From contig RQSC01001135.1 of assembly GCA_013416795.1 (NCBI GenBank), forward strand, positions 1-25,994: a DNA stretch of 25,994 nucleotides, read 5' to 3'. The position numbers were made by a program, and so were the translations under genes. Position 1 is the stretch's first letter. Each line of letters starts with the position of its first letter. The notes under the pieces were generated by a model that made no database searches, had not been told where the DNA came from, and saw only the letters and a program-made list of their open reading frames with translations. The stretch comes from Prasinococcaceae sp. CCMP 1430. Lineage: Eukaryota; Plantae; Prasinodermophyta. Positions 6,501 to 16,490 of this stretch are shown in pieces.

Positions 6501-7336
6501 GGCTGCGGCACGCAGGCGGATGCACAGGCGCGTGCAGGCGCCTCGCGGGCGTTCGCGTGCGGGCGGCGGCAGCGGCGGCGGCGAGCGCGAATGCGGCGGC
6601 GCGTGCAGTGCGCGCTCGCGTCTCCCTGCGGGCGCAGCGCGCGCGCAGTGTGGCGCCCCCCCGCGCCCCCACCTGGGCGCCCGCGCGCGGCTAACAACAA
6701 CAACGCGCGCGCCCACCCACCCTCCGCGCACTTTCGCGTCCCTTCCGCGCGTTCGCGCGACCGCTTCGACCTCACGTTTCCCGCTCTTGTGGCGCGCAAT
6801 GCGCCGAATCCGAATCCCGCCTCGGCGCCCGCGCCCGCCGCTCCATCAAACCGCAGGCGCCCGTGCAAGTTCAAACGCCCGCCGAACGGGCGCCAACGGG
6901 CAGAAAAAAAAATTCGCACGCGCTTTGGCCTTTTGATATGCGGCCGGCGGAGGAAAAAAAAAAACGCAGGGAGCGAAGGAAGGCGACGGTCGAATTCCTC
7001 ACTGTGTGTCCCCTCATAGGGTTTATAAATAATACTGAATAAATATATGGTAACTTGCGCGCGTGCGCCAACCTCAAATGTGTGACCGAAACTCCACGCG
7101 TGGTCCGAATTCGATTTGATGAGCAACTCTTGCGCAAGGTGCACGTCGACCTTTTTTTTTTTTTTTTTAATGGCTTTCGCGCGCGCGCGCCGAGGTTCGG
7201 GTTGAGGCCCCATCTGGACACGCGTGCGTCGTGTGTGGACTGGGCTGTGATGAGCTTGTGAATTAGGGTTCAGATGATGATTGTGATATGCACAGTATTG
7301 CAGCAGTCGGGTGCGATGCCTGACTAGGGTTAGCAG

Positions 7337-9289
7337 CGGCGAGACGCGCCACAGCGCGCGCGCGCGCCGCGCGGGGGCCGGGCGCAGAGGGCGGCGGCGC
7401 TGGCGCCAGCGGCGGGACGTTCGAGCTGCGGGGCGCGGCCGTCGGCGACGTCGAGCGCCATGAGGCGCTGCTGGAGGAGTTCGAGCGCCGCGCGCGGGCG
7501 CGGGCGCAGGCTGTGCCCACGGCAGTAGCGGATGTCAAGGTGCGCCGGGCGGCGCGGCAGCACGCACGAGAGGCAATCGCGACCCGGCCCAGCGCGCGCA
7601 GCCCGTGGCGGCTGCGCAGCCCTACCTGGCCAAGGGTGCACGTTCTAACACCGGCGCCGTGACGTCCCGCCTTGCCTCCCTCTCCCGCTCTTCCCCCCGT
7701 GGCCGACCGCGCGATCTATTTTCATCCCGCACGCCCCTCCTGCGTGTGGCGCGCGATCCTGCGCGTGTGTATTACAGGCGCGCCTGCGCGCGATGGGCCA
7801 TCCGGTGACCCTCTTCGGCGAGGACCCGGCAGACCGGCGTGATCGCCTTCGCAAACTCATGGCCGAGAGCGGCGAGGACGCCCTGGCTGAAGCAGCTGCA
7901 GCTGCGGCCGCAGAGGGTGGCGAGGGCGATGGCGACTTTGCCGAGGCTATTGAACAGCGCGAGCTCTTCTACACTGAAGGTGGCGAGGGGTTGCTCGCCG
8001 TGCGCCGGCGTATCGCCGCGCACTCGCTCAGCGCAGCGAGCGCGCGGCTCGCCGCGCGACGCACGCTCGCGACGGATGAGGCAGCCGCGCGACGGACCCT
8101 CGACGAAAGGTCTGCCGCTCTTGCCGCCGCGCGCCGCGTCGAGCTCGGCTGCTCGGAGCTCGGGGACGAGAGACCGCTGTCGGCGTGCGCATTCTCCTCG
8201 GGCAGCGGCGGTGGCGGTGCACCTGCTCTCGTGACGGCATCGTGGGGCGGCGTCGTGCGCGTGTGGTCGAGCGAGGGCGACGAGCTGCAGCGACGTGCGG
8301 CGTGGATTGCGGGCGCCGAGCGCGTGACAGGCGTCGCGCTGCACCCACGCTTCTCCGCCGATAGCGTCGGACGGGCGACGGACGGCGACGGCGACGCGAC
8401 GATGGGAGGCGGCGGCAATGACGGCGTTGGCGAGGCAGGCGCGGGTGGCGGGGCCGAGGGGCACGTTCTGACTGCGAGCGCCGATGGCACGGCAACGGTG
8501 TGGAGTGCCGCTGGAGGGCGACGGCAGACGCTGCGCGGCCACCTTGAGCGCCTCGCGCGGTGTGCATGGCACCCAATGGGCGACCACGTGGCGACGGCAT
8601 CGTACGACAAGACGTGGCGGCTGTGGGACGTCGAAACGGGCGCCGAGCTGCTCCTGCAGGAGGGGCACTCCCGCGCCGTATATAGCGTCGCGTTCCAGTG
8701 CGATGGTGCACTGGTGGCCACAGGCGGCATGGACGAGCTCGTGCGTGTTTGGGATTGCAGGAGCGGAAAGTGCGTGCACGTGTGCAAGGGGCACGCCAAG
8801 TCCGTGCTGTCCGTTGACTTCTCCCCGGACGGATACACGCTTGCCTCCGGATCGGAGGACAACACCGTGCGGCTTTGGGACTTGCGCAAGGTGAGCACCG
8901 CGCACACGCGTGAGCATCGTGCGCGCTGATGCGGCGCGAAGGATGTCCGCGACAGGCGCGCTGCGAGTACTGCTGACACCGCCCGCCCGCGCGCGCTCCC
9001 GCCCACGCGTTTCGCGTCTGCCGCGCAGCGCGTGTGCCACGCGACCCTGCCGGCGCACGTCAATCTCGTGAGCGCTGTGCGCTTCTCGCGCGAGACGTGC
9101 GGTGCGGTGGTGGCCAGTGCGTCGTTCGACGGCACCGCCGCGCTCTGGTCGACGCGCGACGGCGGGCTGCTTCGGCGGCTCTCGGCGCACGAGGGCAAGG
9201 TGGCGGACCTGGACGTCGACGCGCGCGGGCGGGTGGCCACGGTGGCGCACGACCGCACCGCCAAGCTGTGGGCGCCTCCCATTGACTGA
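7337..9289 (+). CDS. PRP4: U4/U6 snRNP protein Prp4 (PRP4 motif + WD40 repeats); exons ~7337-7539, 7778-8890, 9029-9289; true 5' end unresolved
   Basis: Spliced ...EEFERRARARAQAVPTAVADVK|ARLRAMGHPVTLFGEDPADRRDRLR (PRP4 motif), ELFYTEG, CSELGDERPLS, and WD40 repeats (GHLERLARCAWHP, TASYDKTWRLWD, LLLQEGHSRAVY, RVWDCRSGK, ASGSEDNTVRLWDLR, HDRTAKLW). Confidence 0.9.

Positions 9290-9622: not shown

Positions 9623-9653
<31 letters not shown>
9623..9653. repeat. Poly(C) homopolymer, 31 nt
   Basis: Directly visible about 250 nt upstream of the ATG at 9905. Confidence 0.9.
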
Positions 9654-9904
9654 ATAGCCCTACCCATGGGGCATGGGAGAGTATGCCGCCACACTCACAT
9701 CCACCCCCCACCCTTCTTTCCCCGCCCACCATCTCCCGGAGGCTTCGGGGCGCGCTGCGCTGCGCGCGCTCGCGCGCTGTCGAGCCCACGCGTGCGCTCG
9801 CGGGCCGACGAGTGAGAAGGCGTGCAAGAGACAGACCAGGTGGCGGCGGCAGGGGAAGCCTGCGGCGGCGCAGAGGGGGCCCGAGGGCGCGGCCGTCGCC
9901 CGCG

Positions 9905-12900
9905 ATGCCGATTCACCTGCCGCGCGTGGACGGCGAGTCATGGGTGGACGTGAACTCGCTCTTCTCGTACTACAACGAGGTGTACTTCGGCCGCAAGCTC
10001 GGCGGCGGGCGGGTGACGCTGGGTTGGATCGACCGCGAGTCGGACGACCTCGACTTCCGGTACTGCCAATGCCACAAAGTGCCAAGCTGGTGGCACGGCC
10101 CGCAGCGCGTGCTCGCAGCTGGAGTGTGCTGTGAACACGAGCGCCTTCCTGGCGGACTGATGGTGCGCCGCGCGCACATCCGACTACCGATCGCGCTGCG
10201 CAACTTCCGCCTGACGCAGGAGACCAAGGAGAGCCTGCTGCACAGCATGATCCACGTGTACTTGTACCTCGAGCGGCTGCTGCTGCCAGACGAGCCGTTC
10301 TACGCGCACACGCGATCCTTCCAGCGCATCATGGAACGCATCAACACGGATACGCTCACGGTCGACCTGTACCGCCCGAAAGGCGGCTACAAGATCCTGT
10401 ACTGCGACCGCAACAAGGAGCAGGACGCCGCCGCCGCCCGGCAGGCGCTGGTGGACGGCTTCTCCGAGGACCACTTCAAGATGCTCTTCATCATCAGCAA
10501 GTACTCGCATCAGGCAGATCGCGCCAACGACACGGAGACGTGGATCCGCAAGCTACCGCTACTCGTCCTCGTGTACGAGGGCATCGTCGAGGGGCTCTTC
10601 GACTACGACTACGCCCCCACGAGCGTCTTCATCGGCGGCAAGCGTGTGTACCTCAACATCACACAGGAGGGACGCGACCACATCGACGACCTCGCCGAGG
10701 CGGGCATGGTGCGCTCGCTGCGCCTGGCGACCAGTGATCACCAGCCCGTGACGGCCCTACAGATTACGCCCGAAGGCCTGAGCATCCTTCGCAATATGCC
10801 ATCGGACGTCAAGACGGAGGTGATGAACTTCATCACCGCGCCCGATGGACAAAGCCTCCTATCGGTGGCGTTGCGGGGTGACTTGTTCTACCTGTCTGGC
10901 GTTGGCTACCTGGTCGAGAGCTCTGTGACGGACGTGGAGGACGTGAGCTACGTGTGCTCGCCATACCTGCCCCGCTTCTACATAGACCAAAAGAAGCCGA
11001 TGAGCTCAAACGCGCACCGCGCGCTGGAGAGCGCGTCCGGCGAGAGCAACCTCAAGGACGAGCTGGACGAGGCCATCATGCTGAGCCGCGTGGTAGTTCT
11101 TGTCGGCGAATATTTGCCCTTTGGCTCCAACCAGATGGTAGAGCTCAACGACAAGCTAGGCACGCGCGACCCCATCAAAGGCGGCTCGTTTGCCCCCCAA
11201 GTCGACGAAGAGTCGGCAAAGACGAACCTCGAGGTGCCTCCTGGCTTGACTGAGGTGATCATCAACTCGCACAACATGTCGCATTTCGTCAACCTCGAGG
11301 CCGAGGTGTTCTTTCCTGAGGACGAGGGCATCGTGCAGGTGGAGCAGATTGGCATTCGCTACTCGGTGTCGGGCAGCACCCTTTACGGCCTCATGGTTGA
11401 GGCTGTGCAGGACCGCGTTATGGACGGCATTTCGCTGGACAACATCGCGCGCATGATGGTAGACGTGGCCGTCGACAGCTCCAAGATCACCGACTCGATC
11501 ATCAACGAGCACCAGCGCCACCTGCTCGACGTGGTCTTCGGGGGGCACCCGACCAATCGCGACAAGTGCGTCGTGTTCATGGCGGAGGACATCATACCGC
11601 ACATGGCGGCCTCAAAATACAGAGACGGAGACCGATTTGAGAATGAAATAAAGCAGGTGATAGGTGACGTGCAGCGCACATATGACCTCACCGATGTCGA
11701 TGTGGTCATCTTCGGCACCACCGGCGTACTCTTTGCGGGGCCGGAAGCCTTTCGGCACGAGCCAATACTGACGGCGTACATGAGTCTACGCGGACGTGAG
11801 TCCTTTGTCGTGAACTTCTTCAACAGGCTCTTCGTGCTGGATGATCAGACCAAGGAAGTTCGCGACGGCATCAAAAACTTCAGCAAGGACCCACGCAGTG
11901 TGCCGAGACTACGCACCACGCTGCACGGCATGCACGAGGACACTCTTCTGCTCGGCGAAACCCTGCACTACTTGGAGCAGAGCATGGGCGAGTTGCGTCC
12001 CCTGGATGCGCTGCCTGCTGTGGACCACCCTGACTACGACACTGCTAAGCGGCTCTTCGACCTCCTCGACATCGAACGCACGCAGGAAAGCCTCAACACG
12101 CGCATTGTCGACATAAGGAAACAAGTCGACGCCACGTTGTCCGAGGTCATCTTTCTCATGTCGCAGGTGCACAATTGCGGCGACCTGCTCACGCGGAAGG
12201 TCATCCAGGACACGTCAAACATGTTCGTGTCCGTGGCGCAGCAGATGCGCAGCATGGAGGCGGCGTCTGTGTCGCTCAATGTCATGAAACTCATCTTCTC
12301 GGGCGAGCTCGCTTTTAAGTCACTCGACAGGGTCACTGGCGAGTGGTCGCTCGAAGACCAGCCATTCGCAAGGAGCATGCTCTTCTACCCCATCATTTGG
12401 TAAGCGCCGCACGTGCGCGGCTCTGCGCGCGCTCGAACGCTTGCTGTCGCGTCGCGACCGCGTGCCCCGCGCGCTCGCGCGTGTTCACGCAATGGCACTT
12501 CACGCTGACCTCACTTGTGCGTCAGGTCAAATCGCATGTACTTCGCAATTCTGTCGGTCGCTCTCTGGGCGACGGCGGGCTATGCCATCATCAGGCGCAT
12601 GCGTTCGATGGCCGACAAGGCAACGGGCGGCATATCGACGTCCTTTCGGATACAGTGCTCAGCGAATGTCGCCAAGCTGCGCGCGTTCCTGGACTCGCGC
12701 AATGTCACCGTGGAGGGCGTGATCGAGTCCGGCAGCAGCCTGGTCAGGGAGTTTACGTGGGAAGACAAGACAAGGCGTGTGTGGCTCGGGTACACGGCGA
12801 TCATCACGCTCGTGGTTGAGATGAGACACGGGTTCGTGCAGAGCGCTTCCATACGCATCGTTCGCCCGGCGAGCCAAGCCCCGAAGCTCTACCCACGCGA

Positions 12901-13381
12901 TTTGCAGGCGCTTCTGCTCGGCCAGCTCGAGGACGCGCGCGTGCTGGCCAAGACGAGCAACGTCATCTCGCTGAGCGGCGAGGCCCACTCGCCGCGCGTG
13001 CTCTTTGTGCGCGAGGTGGGCGCGACCCTCATGCGCGAAGTGGCCATCGACAAATCGAGCGTCGATTGCCTGTGCACGCGCATCGCCTCCAAGTTCCTGT
13101 ACAAACCCGAAAACGTCGTGTCCGTGAGCGTGCGCGAACTCCTGCCCGATGGCTCGTATTCCGACGAGGTGATCGAGACAGACCATCAGGTGACCAAGCT
13201 GCGCCCCTATGCCACCATCGACGTCATCTTCTCAGGCAAGCCAGACCCCGGCATCGCCAAGCTCAAACACATCAAGAGCAAGGACACGGACTTCCTCGAC
13301 GTGCTCCAGCGGCAAGGCCTCATGCCCGAGCTCGCCAAGGATCCGGCGCAGGCGCGCACCGACGGCGCGGGCGCGGCGTGA
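9905..13381 (+). CDS. Uncharacterised ~1116-aa protein: SprT/Spartan-like domain (HSMIH), unknown central region, CorA-like helical/2-TM region, ubiquitin-like C-terminus; exons 9905-12399 and 12526-13381
   Basis: Long ORF with strong coding-type codon bias. The GTAAG..CTGAC..CAG phase-2 intron 12400-12525 joins two ORFs in frame. The N-terminus (DVNSLFSYYNEVYF...AAGVC...IRLPIALRNFR...KESLLHSMIHVYL...HTRSFQRIMERIN...DLYRPKGGYKI) follows the plant SPRTN pattern. Confidence 0.85.
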
Positions 13382-14699: not shown

Positions 14700-16421
14700 C
14701 TAGGAAGGCACTTCGCTCGGCTGGACGCTGCGCTCCGCCGGCAGATAGACCACAAAGGAGCCATCCGCAGAGAAGGAGCCGGGGTTGACCGCTTGCGTGT
14801 CGCCACATGTGACTGTGGCCTGCGCGCTCGAGTCCGCGAGGACGAGCACGTCAGGTGCGTCATACAGCCGCATGGCGCTGTCGAAGTCCCAATACACAGC
14901 CTGCGCCGCGAGCGGCACGGGTGAGAGGTGCGCTTGCCCCAGCAGCGTTGTGGCCATCACCGCGAACATGCCGCCCTCCTCCGGTTCAGTCGGCGGCGCG
15001 AGGGCCAGGCGGCGCATCTTCATGGCGATGTTCGAGCGGTACAGCACAATCTCTTGTGTGTAGAACCTCACCCGACACGGATTAGATCCGAAGCTCACCC
15101 TGCACTTGCCCTGTTTGGTGAGCTTTTCTGTGACATACTCGGGTAGATGCGGCCGCGGCAGTGCCGACCCGGCTGGCCCAGGATCGTTTGGTCCGGGGAC
15201 AAGCAGGAACAGCGAATGCTCACAGATTTGCGGGTGCTCCTCGATGAGCTCGCCCAGCTCGCTCAGCTTGCGCGAGAGCGTGGCCACGCGCGCAGCCGTG
15301 CTCCCGCCCGAGCCGCCCTCGGCGCCAGCGCTCTGCCTGCTCGCGGCGCCACCGCCGGCCCACTCACCCCCGTCGCCGCTCAGGAAGTCGCCCATAAGCA
15401 CGAACATGGTCGGCGGAGCCATGCCGTCGGCGGTGGACGCCTCAAAACCACTCAGCACTTTCTGCAAGCTTTCCATGGTCGCGGGGTCATCGAGGTGCAC
15501 GTCCGACATGAGCACAAGCATGTCCCCGGTCGCTGCCTGTTCCAAACGCCTGAGGTGCTCTTCATCTCCCGCCGCCGTAGCTGCTGCCGCTCCGCCCATC
15601 GCCGCGTGGCCTGCCCTGGCCGCCTCGGCCTTCGTGACGAGCGGCGGCGACGCCAGCTCGTGCACCTCGAACACGCCGTCCGACGGGCGCATCACCCCCT
15701 TTGCGAGCACAATGCAGCACTCGGTGAAAACGCCCCCGAGATGCACCGCCCGGCGCATGTCGATTGTCACCGTGCCCGACGTATCCTCGAGCGAGAACGT
15801 GTCCTCGCGAAGCTGCACGAGCGCCCCCATGATGCACCGCACGACGCCCATGCCCGAGCCCAGCAACGACGCGATCGGCACGATATCGTTGCCCGCGCTT
15901 TGCCCGCCACCGCCCGGGCCAAGGCTGCGTGCAGAAGGTCCGGCCAGCACCGGCTTGGAGAGTCCCGGCAGCAGCGAGAGCCGCTCCTGCAGCAGGTACA
16001 GTCGGTCGCGGAATGCGGCCGTCTTCGCCTCCGGTGAGCCAAGCAGCGTGCCCGGATCGCCCATCTCGCGAAAGCGCCGCAGTGCGAGGTCATAGGTGAG
16101 CCGCGGGCCCGCGAACGCCGAGATCACGGCCACGGGCTCGACCGCCGTGCCGTCTGCATCGGCCGTCGCAGCAGCGGTCTCGGTGGGCGCGGCCGCGCTC
16201 GCGGTGTGCAGCGCCTTCACCGCCGCCTCGGGCGAGACGATGTTCGTGCCGGCCTCCTCGCACAGCGCCGTCACCGACTCGAGCACTTGCTCGATGAGCC
16301 CGTCCGGGTCGTCCCAGCTGCCCGCCGCCTCGGCGATCGCGCCCAGCGCCCCCATCGAGAGCGAGAAGCCCGCCGCGGCAAACTCGCGGTGCACCGCCGC
16401 GCGCGTCGCGGCATCGGCCAT
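14700..16421 (-). CDS. POLE2: DNA polymerase epsilon subunit B (DPB2), intronless, ~573 aa
   Basis: AFRDRLYLLQERL, FSLEDTSGTV, GVFTECCIVLAKG, LMSDVHLDDP, FVLMGDF, FLLVPGPNDPG, LPRPHLP, SNPCRVRFYTQEIVLYR, QAHLSPVP, VYWDFDSAMRLYDAPDVLVLAD, VNPGSF. ATG 16421 (MADAATRAAV) is preferred over 16490, which lies within the promoter motif. Confidence 0.94.
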   Translation of the reverse strand: MADAATRAAVHREFAAAGFSLSMGALGAIAEAAGSWDDPDGLIEQVLESVTALCEEAGTNIVSPEAAVKALHTASAAAPTETAAATADADGTAVEPVAVISAFAGPRLTYDLALRRFREMGDPGTLLGSPEAKTAAFRDRLYLLQERLSLLPGLSKPVLAGPSARSLGPGGGGQSAGNDIVPIASLLGSGMGVVRCIMGALVQLREDTFSLEDTSGTVTIDMRRAVHLGGVFTECCIVLAKGVMRPSDGVFEVHELASPPLVTKAEAARAGHAAMGGAAAATAAGDEEHLRRLEQAATGDMLVLMSDVHLDDPATMESLQKVLSGFEASTADGMAPPTMFVLMGDFLSGDGGEWAGGGAASRQSAGAEGGSGGSTAARVATLSRKLSELGELIEEHPQICEHSLFLLVPGPNDPGPAGSALPRPHLPEYVTEKLTKQGKCRVSFGSNPCRVRFYTQEIVLYRSNIAMKMRRLALAPPTEPEEGGMFAVMATTLLGQAHLSPVPLAAQAVYWDFDSAMRLYDAPDVLVLADSSAQATVTCGDTQAVNPGSFSADGSFVVYLPAERSVQPSEVPS

Positions 16422-16470
16422 CGCCCCCGCCGCAGCAGTCGCGCCCCCGCCCCGCGCGCGCTCGCTTCTG

Positions 16471-16490
16471 CAAAATGCATCAAAATGCAT
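16471..16490. promoter_or_regulatory. Tandem CAAAATGCAT x2, a copy of the recurrent intergenic motif, ~50 nt upstream of the POLE2 ATG
   Basis: The same motif occurs at 1694-1705, 13633-13644, 17099-17107 and 17209-17221, all in 5' intergenic regions. Confidence 0.5.

Follow-up and report, generated by a model that had tools for sequence, protein, structure and literature searches.

The window analysed here is the whole 25,994-nucleotide stretch of contig RQSC01001135.1 from Prasinococcaceae sp. CCMP 1430. At positions 9905-13381 of its + strand lies a nuclear gene, from a green alga of high GC content, that has two exons (9905-12399 and 12526-13381) and one fused product, predicted to be a membrane protein of ~1,115 residues. 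This protein is the eukaryotic fused form of a prokaryotic pair, MJ1567 and MJ1566, to which a dead SprT domain and an ANKRD40-type ubiquitin-like (UBL) domain have been added. We regard the identity of the gene and its architecture as almost certain. A preliminary description of the same DNA had proposed a membrane-anchored oligomeric channel or sensor with a pseudo-protease domain, and that interpretation as a whole is partly supported by our analysis. The gene and its product comprise the following parts (TM, transmembrane helix):

9905-12399, +: exon 1, 831 codons and 2 bases of a split Trp codon
9932-10354, +: SPRTN-type SprT-like metalloprotease subdomain, residues ~10-150 (PF10263, 30.6 bits; Spartan 6mdw alignment)
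10241-10255, +: HSMIH replacing HExxH (Glu to Ser), aligned to Spartan HEMIH
10460-10954, +: MJ1567-family domain, residues 186-350 (TM-score 0.70 to the archaeal MJ1567 cluster)
10955-11041, +: linker (..SPYLP..SSNAHRA..) between the two formerly separate gene products, from alignments to prokaryotic and bacterial fused relatives
11042-11740, +: MJ1566_N alpha/beta domain, residues ~380-612, strongly conserved (predicted local distance difference test, pLDDT, >90 in the model)
11747-12262, +: stalk, two long helices and a ~89-residue helix running into TM1 (P0002 model)
12272-12325, +: TM1-like helix, residues 790-807, one face polar and conserved, another of the form A-G-x-x-A
12326-12340, +: D-R-x-x-G motif at the position of CorA's GMN (D in 77/80 and R in 73/80 family rows)
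12400-12525, +: in-frame intron of 126 nt, GTAAGC...CAG, holding two stop codons
12526-13381, +: exon 2, 284 codons and the stop codon
12536-12592, +: TM2, exon-2 residues 4-22 (Kyte-Doolittle 1.77)
12626-12934, +: alpha/beta domain after the membrane hairpin, also at the C-terminus of prokaryotic MJ1566 proteins
12989-13240, +: UBL beta-grasp domain of ANKRD40_UBL type, exon-2 residues ~155-238 (P0002 model; P0012 homology)
13241-13378, +: C-terminal tail of short helices with low model confidence, conserved in the closest orthologue only

The span 9905-13381 is not a single open reading frame (ORF). All peptide strings quoted in the preliminary description were found there in frame 2 of the + strand, which is interrupted by in-frame stop codons, a TAA at 12401-12403 and a second at ~12503-12505. 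Both stops fall within a GT-AG intron whose length is a multiple of three: the first ORF terminates with ..LFYPIIW followed by TAA, and removal of the intron restores the TGG codon and leads on to S-N-R-M-Y-F-A-I-L. We searched exon 1 (window:9905-12397, 831 amino acids (aa)) and exon 2 (window:12527-13378, 284 aa) separately and used the orthologue P0002 (1074 aa; identity 82% over exon 1 and 53% over exon 2) as a full-length proxy for folding. On genomic contigs L002 and L003, P0002 is read from a single ORF that is free of interruptions and adjoins an RWP-RK gene; across the junction its DNA reads ..LFYGVIWPNQMYIA.. as against ..LFYPIIW|SNRMYFA.. in the window. The more distant SprT-bearing relatives P0004 (1272 aa) and P0020 (1282 aa) are single ORFs too. 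Because these three genes encode the whole architecture without interruption, the fusion is real, and the single fused gene of the preliminary description is borne out by the orthologue P0002. That 9905-12403 and 12515-13381 are instead two separate genes, or that the downstream part is untranslated, is very improbable. Such an artefact would fit the two ORFs separated by stop codons and the prokaryote-style gene callers that gave the 832-aa protein P0001, ending at the first stop; however, the intron has canonical GT-AG ends and an in-frame length, P0002, P0004 and P0020 carry the full architecture, and prokaryotic MJ1566 proteins run colinearly across the junction.

The 5' splice site overlaps the stop codon (TG|GTAA, window 12398-12403), so intron retention would stop translation right after the TM1-proximal helix. 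The retained form would be 832 aa long and would be devoid of TM2, the C-terminal domain and the UBL; it is exactly P0001, the product of the prokaryote-style callers (99% identical). As the start codon, ATG 9905 is our best guess, and homology to the SprT-bearing relatives starts immediately downstream of it. An in-frame ATG at 9683 is less likely, as the sequence that it would add has 72% GC, is rich in Pro and Arg and lies behind a poly-C tract and the out-of-frame ATGs 9666 and 9673. The tract, ~32 C in length, and these ATGs occupy window 9624-9690, upstream of the gene; an extension from ATG 9683 would be rich in Arg, Pro and Ala and may provide a longer N-terminus, possibly a targeting peptide. 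Both flanking genes are ordinary nuclear housekeeping genes:

7793-9289, +: PRP4-like U4/U6 snRNP WD40 protein (PRP4 motif and WD40 repeats), apparently intron-split
14700-16490, -: DNA polymerase alpha/epsilon subunit B (PF04042, 117 bits)

A bacterial origin of the SprT-bearing clade was ruled out: the contigs of P0004 and P0020 hold ATG101 and split ADK gene models and are therefore eukaryotic. On these contigs (L009:4816-7235) the gene adjoins lactate/malate dehydrogenase and adenylate kinase genes in a conserved micro-synteny, which is not found in the window, where PRP4 and the DNA polymerase subunit are the neighbours.

The core of the protein belongs to a catalogued family. A word search returned >150 relatives, with hits down to E=0 and precomputed Pfam 38.1 annotations PF27231 and PF27230, and the assignment is made through these annotations of relatives (P0001, P0002), not through a direct hidden Markov model (HMM) match. 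The ESM Atlas names the two families MJ1567 (PF27231) and MJ1566_N (PF27230) and holds a 59-member "fusion protein" cluster, 42% of whose members have a SprT-like domain. The architecture had been called unassignable to any described family in the preliminary description, which no longer holds because the family is already in Pfam. In a profile search with the 315-residue MJ1566_N region, 1149 cluster representatives (counted at the 50%-identity clustering level) were matched at E<=1e-3 and 301 at E<=1e-30. The named eukaryotic matches come from oomycetes and cryptophytes, and Atlas clusters add Chlorophyta; a profile search with the MJ1567 region, run with a short length window, gave eukaryotic exon fragments only, PF27231-only ones among them. 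Several relatives (P0023, P0025, P0030, P0050, P0153, P0334 and others) bear the JGI label 'WD repeat-containing protein 35' (IFT121) but lack a WD40 domain; the label is apparently a mis-annotation that has spread. Other modules have been added elsewhere in the family, namely an N-terminal ubiquitin (PF00240) in P0213 and P0222 and TPR in P0116. Mapping of the distribution, prokaryotes and fusion partners included, had been suggested before, and it has now turned up split prokaryotic pairs, bacterial fusions, and SprT, UBL, ubiquitin and TPR partners.

Conservation is strongest in the MJ1566_N domain, with a mean column identity of 66% across chlorophytes, oomycetes and cryptophytes and ~60 invariant columns that are rich in D, E, S, N, Q, R and K. 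The MJ1567 domain has a winged-helix-like core and terminates in an invariant E-x-E-D-V-S-Y strand. Despite its place in Pfam the family is uncharacterised, and we found no function, structure or paper for it. PDB sequence searches with the protein and with two domain profiles returned Spartan for the SprT part only and nothing for MJ1566_N, and neither NCBIfam nor PADLOC gave a match on either exon. No mention of MJ1566, MJ1567, PF27231 or PF27230 was found in the literature searched, and nothing relevant on CorA-like proteins with Asgard, or on a combination of SprT, CorA and UBL; two recent publications on Asgard structural homology do not mention CorA or MJ156x. Three points set out below are undescribed in the literature and databases searched: the resemblance to CorA, the passage from operon to fusion and the repeated inactivation of the SprT module.

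In prokaryotes the two halves of the core are separate proteins. MJ1567 is a small protein with a putative winged helix and a zinc ribbon, and MJ1566, of ~590 residues, consists of an alpha/beta domain, a helical stalk, a hairpin of two transmembrane helices and a C-terminal alpha/beta domain. Stand-alone MJ1566 proteins (575-607 aa) are colinear with the algal protein from ..SNIRDELDE.. to the end of the post-membrane alpha/beta domain, a stretch that takes in the stalk and both hydrophobic helices. The prokaryotic MJ1567 protein aligns to algal residues 186-350, ending at the E-x-E-D-V-S-Y strand. On all six contigs with upstream DNA (L005, an ENA contig, L006, L007, L010 and L011), the MJ1567 gene, of 184-213 codons, lies directly against the MJ1566 gene or overlaps it (gaps of -4 to +23 nt), and both are on one strand; other neighbours are unconserved. 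The assembly of L011 is named "Candidatus Hodarchaeota" at NCBI; two archaeal markers, ribosomal protein L15e and RNase P p30, are encoded on L010, and a further homologue, P0391, is labelled Helarchaeota. Three of the prokaryotic MJ1567 proteins (L005:5394-5996, L006:4155-4793, L007:5375-5998) have, past the putative winged helix, a CxxC...CxxC zinc ribbon that weakly matches RPB9-type zinc ribbons, and all four cysteines are lost in the eukaryotic fused proteins, the algal one included. The algal protein thus resembles the pair in being colinear over the whole of both proteins (PF27231 and PF27230) and in its fold (TM-score 0.66-0.70 to archaeal clusters); unlike the pair, it is fused through a linker, has lost the MJ1567 Cys4 ribbon, has a fixed D-R motif after TM1 and has gained the SprT and UBL modules.

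Fused genes are found in many protists and occur in some bacteria as well. P0313 is a fused 815-aa MJ1567-MJ1566 gene (L012:8001-10448) that keeps the zinc-ribbon cysteines; its 561-kb contig is bacterial, as CheW (two copies), T2SSE ATPase, STAS and SpoU genes surround it, together with Peptidase_M50. P0305 and P0338, labelled bacterium and Riflebacteria, are likewise fused and keep the ribbon. Given these three proteins, fusion is not exclusive to eukaryotes. The prokaryotic homologues were reached through an exhaustive profile search and a word search seeded with P0334; in a scan of GTDB genomes with eukaryote-derived patterns, L001 was the single contig matched. This contig (JAGQJP010000227.1, from a 'Myxococcales bacterium' metagenome-assembled genome in GTDB) bears at 6881-7570 a eukaryote-type fused gene that runs off the contig end and is 51% identical to algal residues 186-416. 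The contig has 65.6% GC, and its other ORFs, which are closely spaced, look bacterial (glutamine synthetase, Fe-ADH, GNAT, UDPGP and a weak match to BMC); the fused gene reflects either horizontal transfer or mis-binning. In a quick, unrooted IQ-TREE phylogeny (44 rows, 777 columns), eukaryote-type proteins split from the prokaryote set with an SH-aLRT support of 100, and seven SprT-bearing proteins formed one clade (100), sister to a chlorophyte UBL-bearing clade (99).

The N-terminal SPRTN-like pseudo-protease domain had been recognised by eye in the preliminary description, and it is confirmed by a PF10263 score above the gathering cut-off of 25.6 bits (residues 58-148) and by HSMIH aligning on Spartan HEMIH; in the PDB sequence search, Spartan 6mdw matched this part at E 5.9e-4. 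As in SPRTN, the metalloprotease subdomain aligns, the H-x-x-x-H helix and third His included, and all three zinc-ligand histidines are kept (H113, H117 and the His of ..FYAH..). Unlike SPRTN, the algal protein has Ser for the catalytic Glu and, judged from this sequence, its SprT domain is catalytically dead. Among 13 SprT-bearing relatives the catalytic Glu is found in 3, Ser in 6, Gly in 3 and Gln in 1; as only these 3 retain Glu, proteolysis is evidently dispensable in the fusion. The Spartan alignment ends at chain residue 125 of 194, so that the last ~70 residues of the crystallised domain find no counterpart, and only ~35 Cys-poor residues follow before the MJ1567 domain, from which we conclude that the algal protein lacks the second subdomain of the Spartan SprT domain. 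That subdomain is reportedly, from the work on 6mdw, the part that binds zinc and single-stranded DNA. Of the metal- and DNA-binding pseudo-protease proposed earlier, the zinc ligands of the first subdomain stand, and the part reported to bind zinc and DNA does not. The algal protein also differs from SPRTN in having no SHP, PIP or UBZ tail and in a ~30-residue insertion ahead of the central strands.

At the other end, exon 2 is homologous to P0012 (E 5e-20) over residues 757-981 of the latter, the PF27687 tail included, and the link to PF27687 is made through annotated homologues, not through a direct HMM match. The chordate ANKRD40 Atlas cluster matches residues 797-1032 of the P0002 model. 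The final ~80 residues had been read as a beta-grasp; the fold is found in the orthologue model, but it is not the end of the protein, as a 46-residue tail follows. In ANKRD40 the UBL follows ankyrin repeats, whereas here it follows the membrane hairpin and, in the clade of the algal protein, carries a loop insertion of ~8 residues. In a comparison that also took in other UBLs (ISG15, CIDE-N and Hub1), the domain proved to have no C-terminal Gly-Gly and is therefore not a conjugatable modifier.

To place these parts in one structure, P0002 was modelled as a single chain with AlphaFold2 from an 84-row alignment. The model has a mean pLDDT of 82.8, with core residues 140-660 above 90. Its N-terminal part comprises helices and two beta-hairpins (the MJ1567 part) and is followed by the large alpha/beta domain; helices are predicted at 579-621, at 629-659 and over 89 residues at 686-774, the last ending as the first hydrophobic segment. 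After TM1 come a short helix (782-793), TM2 (helix 797-827), an alpha/beta domain (828-930) and the beta-grasp (951-1029). In an Atlas fold search, an archaeal MJ1566_N cluster was matched with a TM-score of 0.66 (root-mean-square deviation (rmsd) 3.0 over 356 residues), with further matches to a bacterial MJ0711_N cluster (0.55) and to the chordate ANKRD40 cluster.

Of the two hydrophobic segments proposed earlier, the second is strong and the first is weak in the algal protein (Kyte-Doolittle 1.24 over 19 residues); the means across 75 family members are 1.52 for TM1 and 1.85 for TM2. In TM1, one conserved face consists of Ser, Leu, Met, Gln and Leu and another of small residues; TM2 conserves a Pro, a Trp-Phe and an Asn or Ser. 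In the same 75 proteins, the inter-helix loop is net acidic (K+R 2.2, D+E 3.8) and the 16 residues past TM2 are net basic (2.6 versus 1.0). These charges fit an N-in, loop-out, C-in topology, which would place the UBL in the cytosol, as expected. The D-R pair is mostly eukaryote-type, being present in one (P0334) of five aligned stand-alone MJ1566 homologues.

The predicted arrangement of these elements is CorA-like in architecture, without membership of the CorA family. In the order seen in CorA, ZntB, Mrs2 and CmaX (MIT superfamily), a putative alpha/beta cytosolic domain and a helical hairpin precede a very long stalk helix that enters TM1, and a short outside loop leads to TM2. The CorA family is the top Foldseek match of the predicted P0002 structure, and in a wide structural search independent of Foldseek CorA matches alone extended into the alpha/beta domain and both transmembrane helices; one of them, 5n77_A, covered model positions 373-731 with 142 residues aligned at an rmsd of 2.4. 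Several results weigh against a closer relationship. Spectrin repeats, STAT and designed bundles match the three-helix bundle by itself (583-732) with an equal Z; comparison of the family profile with E. coli CorA by hhalign, in which the CorA side was one sequence and not a profile, gave a probability of 0.3%; no PF01544 match was found in the algal protein (E<=1) or its prokaryotic homologues; and the transmembrane region has D-R-x-x-G in place of GMN. It is because the hhalign, PF01544 and GMN tests were negative that we speak of architecture only. The CorA/ZntB arrangement of the preliminary description agrees with the order of elements, the top structural match and the absence of GMN that it had noted, and finds no support in sequence or profile similarity. 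The algal protein also differs from CorA in its longer loop (~25 residues with a short helix), in the ~250 cytosolic residues that follow TM2, where CorA ends, in an alpha/beta domain that is much larger and far more conserved, and in the extra winged-helix-like subunit or domain of its family.

Together, these data suggest, tentatively and with somewhat less than an even chance of being right, a CorA-architecture oligomeric channel or sensor with acquired ubiquitin-system modules. In such a model, the MJ1566 part would be built like a CorA-superfamily subunit and would assemble as an oligomer, with the long stalk helices continuing into pore-lining TM1 helices. The Ser/Gln face of TM1 and the near-invariant Asp-Arg at its outer end could stand in for the GMN filter of CorA. 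Both large soluble parts would be cytosolic, in keeping with the N-in, acidic-loop-out, basic-C-in pattern, and the conserved acidic alpha/beta domain may sense a ligand or ion and gate the membrane part accordingly. The former MJ1567 subunit would be docked on this domain through the E-D-V-S-Y strand, and the dead SprT and UBL domains would act not in catalysis but in binding proteins of ubiquitin/p97-type machinery. A wider proposal, which we consider possible but rather doubtful, is that MJ1567/MJ1566 is a membrane channel or sensor of two components and ancient origin, common to Asgard archaea, some bacteria and many lineages of protists. It would make up its own GMN-less branch of the CorA architecture, with an Asp-Arg filter and a docked winged-helix regulator, that eukaryotes fused and wired to ubiquitin-like signalling, with SprT repurposed as an inactive binding module.

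The weak statistical support for CorA could be taken to mean that the protein does not conduct. In that case the hairpin would be an anchor that tethers a cytosolic assembly to an organelle membrane, and the modules would bring in partners from the ubiquitin system or of p97 type, for instance to control the quality of membrane proteins. All modules accreted by the family are interaction modules (SprT with its Glu lost, UBL, the ubiquitin of P0213/P0222 and the TPR of P0116), as a scaffold would have it. However, the polar face of TM1, the D-R motif and the Asn/Ser of TM2 are conserved well beyond the needs of a simple anchor, and the prokaryotic pair keeps stalk and hairpin although it has none of the ubiquitin-system modules; a scaffold is a possibility to which we give limited credence.

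The exceptional conservation of MJ1566_N, with its 66% mean column identity and ~60 invariant columns, and the lack of any solved structure matching it by sequence would also suit a membrane-anchored enzyme, in which the invariant Asp, Glu, Ser, Asn, Arg and Lys form an active site positioned by stalk and hairpin. This is unlikely, as the domain has no known catalytic motif and no match to a Pfam or NCBIfam enzyme family, and the structural matches that reach it in the whole-model search are CorA cytosolic domains only. Less likely still is a prokaryotic conflict or stress module, later domesticated by eukaryotes, in which an MJ1567 sensor triggers MJ1566 as a membrane-perturbing effector with two transmembrane helices. 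A self-contained, translationally coupled two-gene unit with unconserved neighbours and a patchy distribution over archaea and bacteria has that character, and residues 393-500 (stalk/TM1) of P0376, a prokaryotic MJ1566 homologue, gave sub-threshold NCBIfam matches to SLATT_4 and SLATT_1 (E ~0.01). Yet with 15 bits these fall far short of the cut-offs (41-55), no such match appeared in the two further proteins tested, PADLOC found nothing in eukaryotic or prokaryotic proteins, the contigs examined have no defence-island neighbours, and the strong purifying conservation across eukaryotes suggests a housekeeping role.

If the preferred reading as a CorA-architecture channel or sensor is true, the known roles of this channel scaffold would be extended by a CorA-type form that lacks GMN, has a winged-helix unit permanently joined to it and keeps its C-terminal domain in the cytosol. 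The family is large (1149 representatives) and among the most conserved for its size in chlorophytes, oomycetes and cryptophytes, with no paper found. Its presence in oomycete plant pathogens makes the family accessible to genetics. The series of forms, from the split pair in Asgard and other prokaryotes through the ribbon-keeping fusion of some bacteria to the ribbon-less eukaryotic fusion with UBL, SprT, ubiquitin or TPR, would clearly illustrate how an operon evolved into a fusion close to the divide between prokaryotes and eukaryotes. On the wider proposal, a membrane protein of the green-lineage SprT subclade would have taken over the domain of a DNA-protein-crosslink protease as an inactive binding module, and the repeated loss of the catalytic Glu from this domain (10 of 13 relatives) provides a natural set of variants in which the binding partners of a dead SPRTN domain could be sought.

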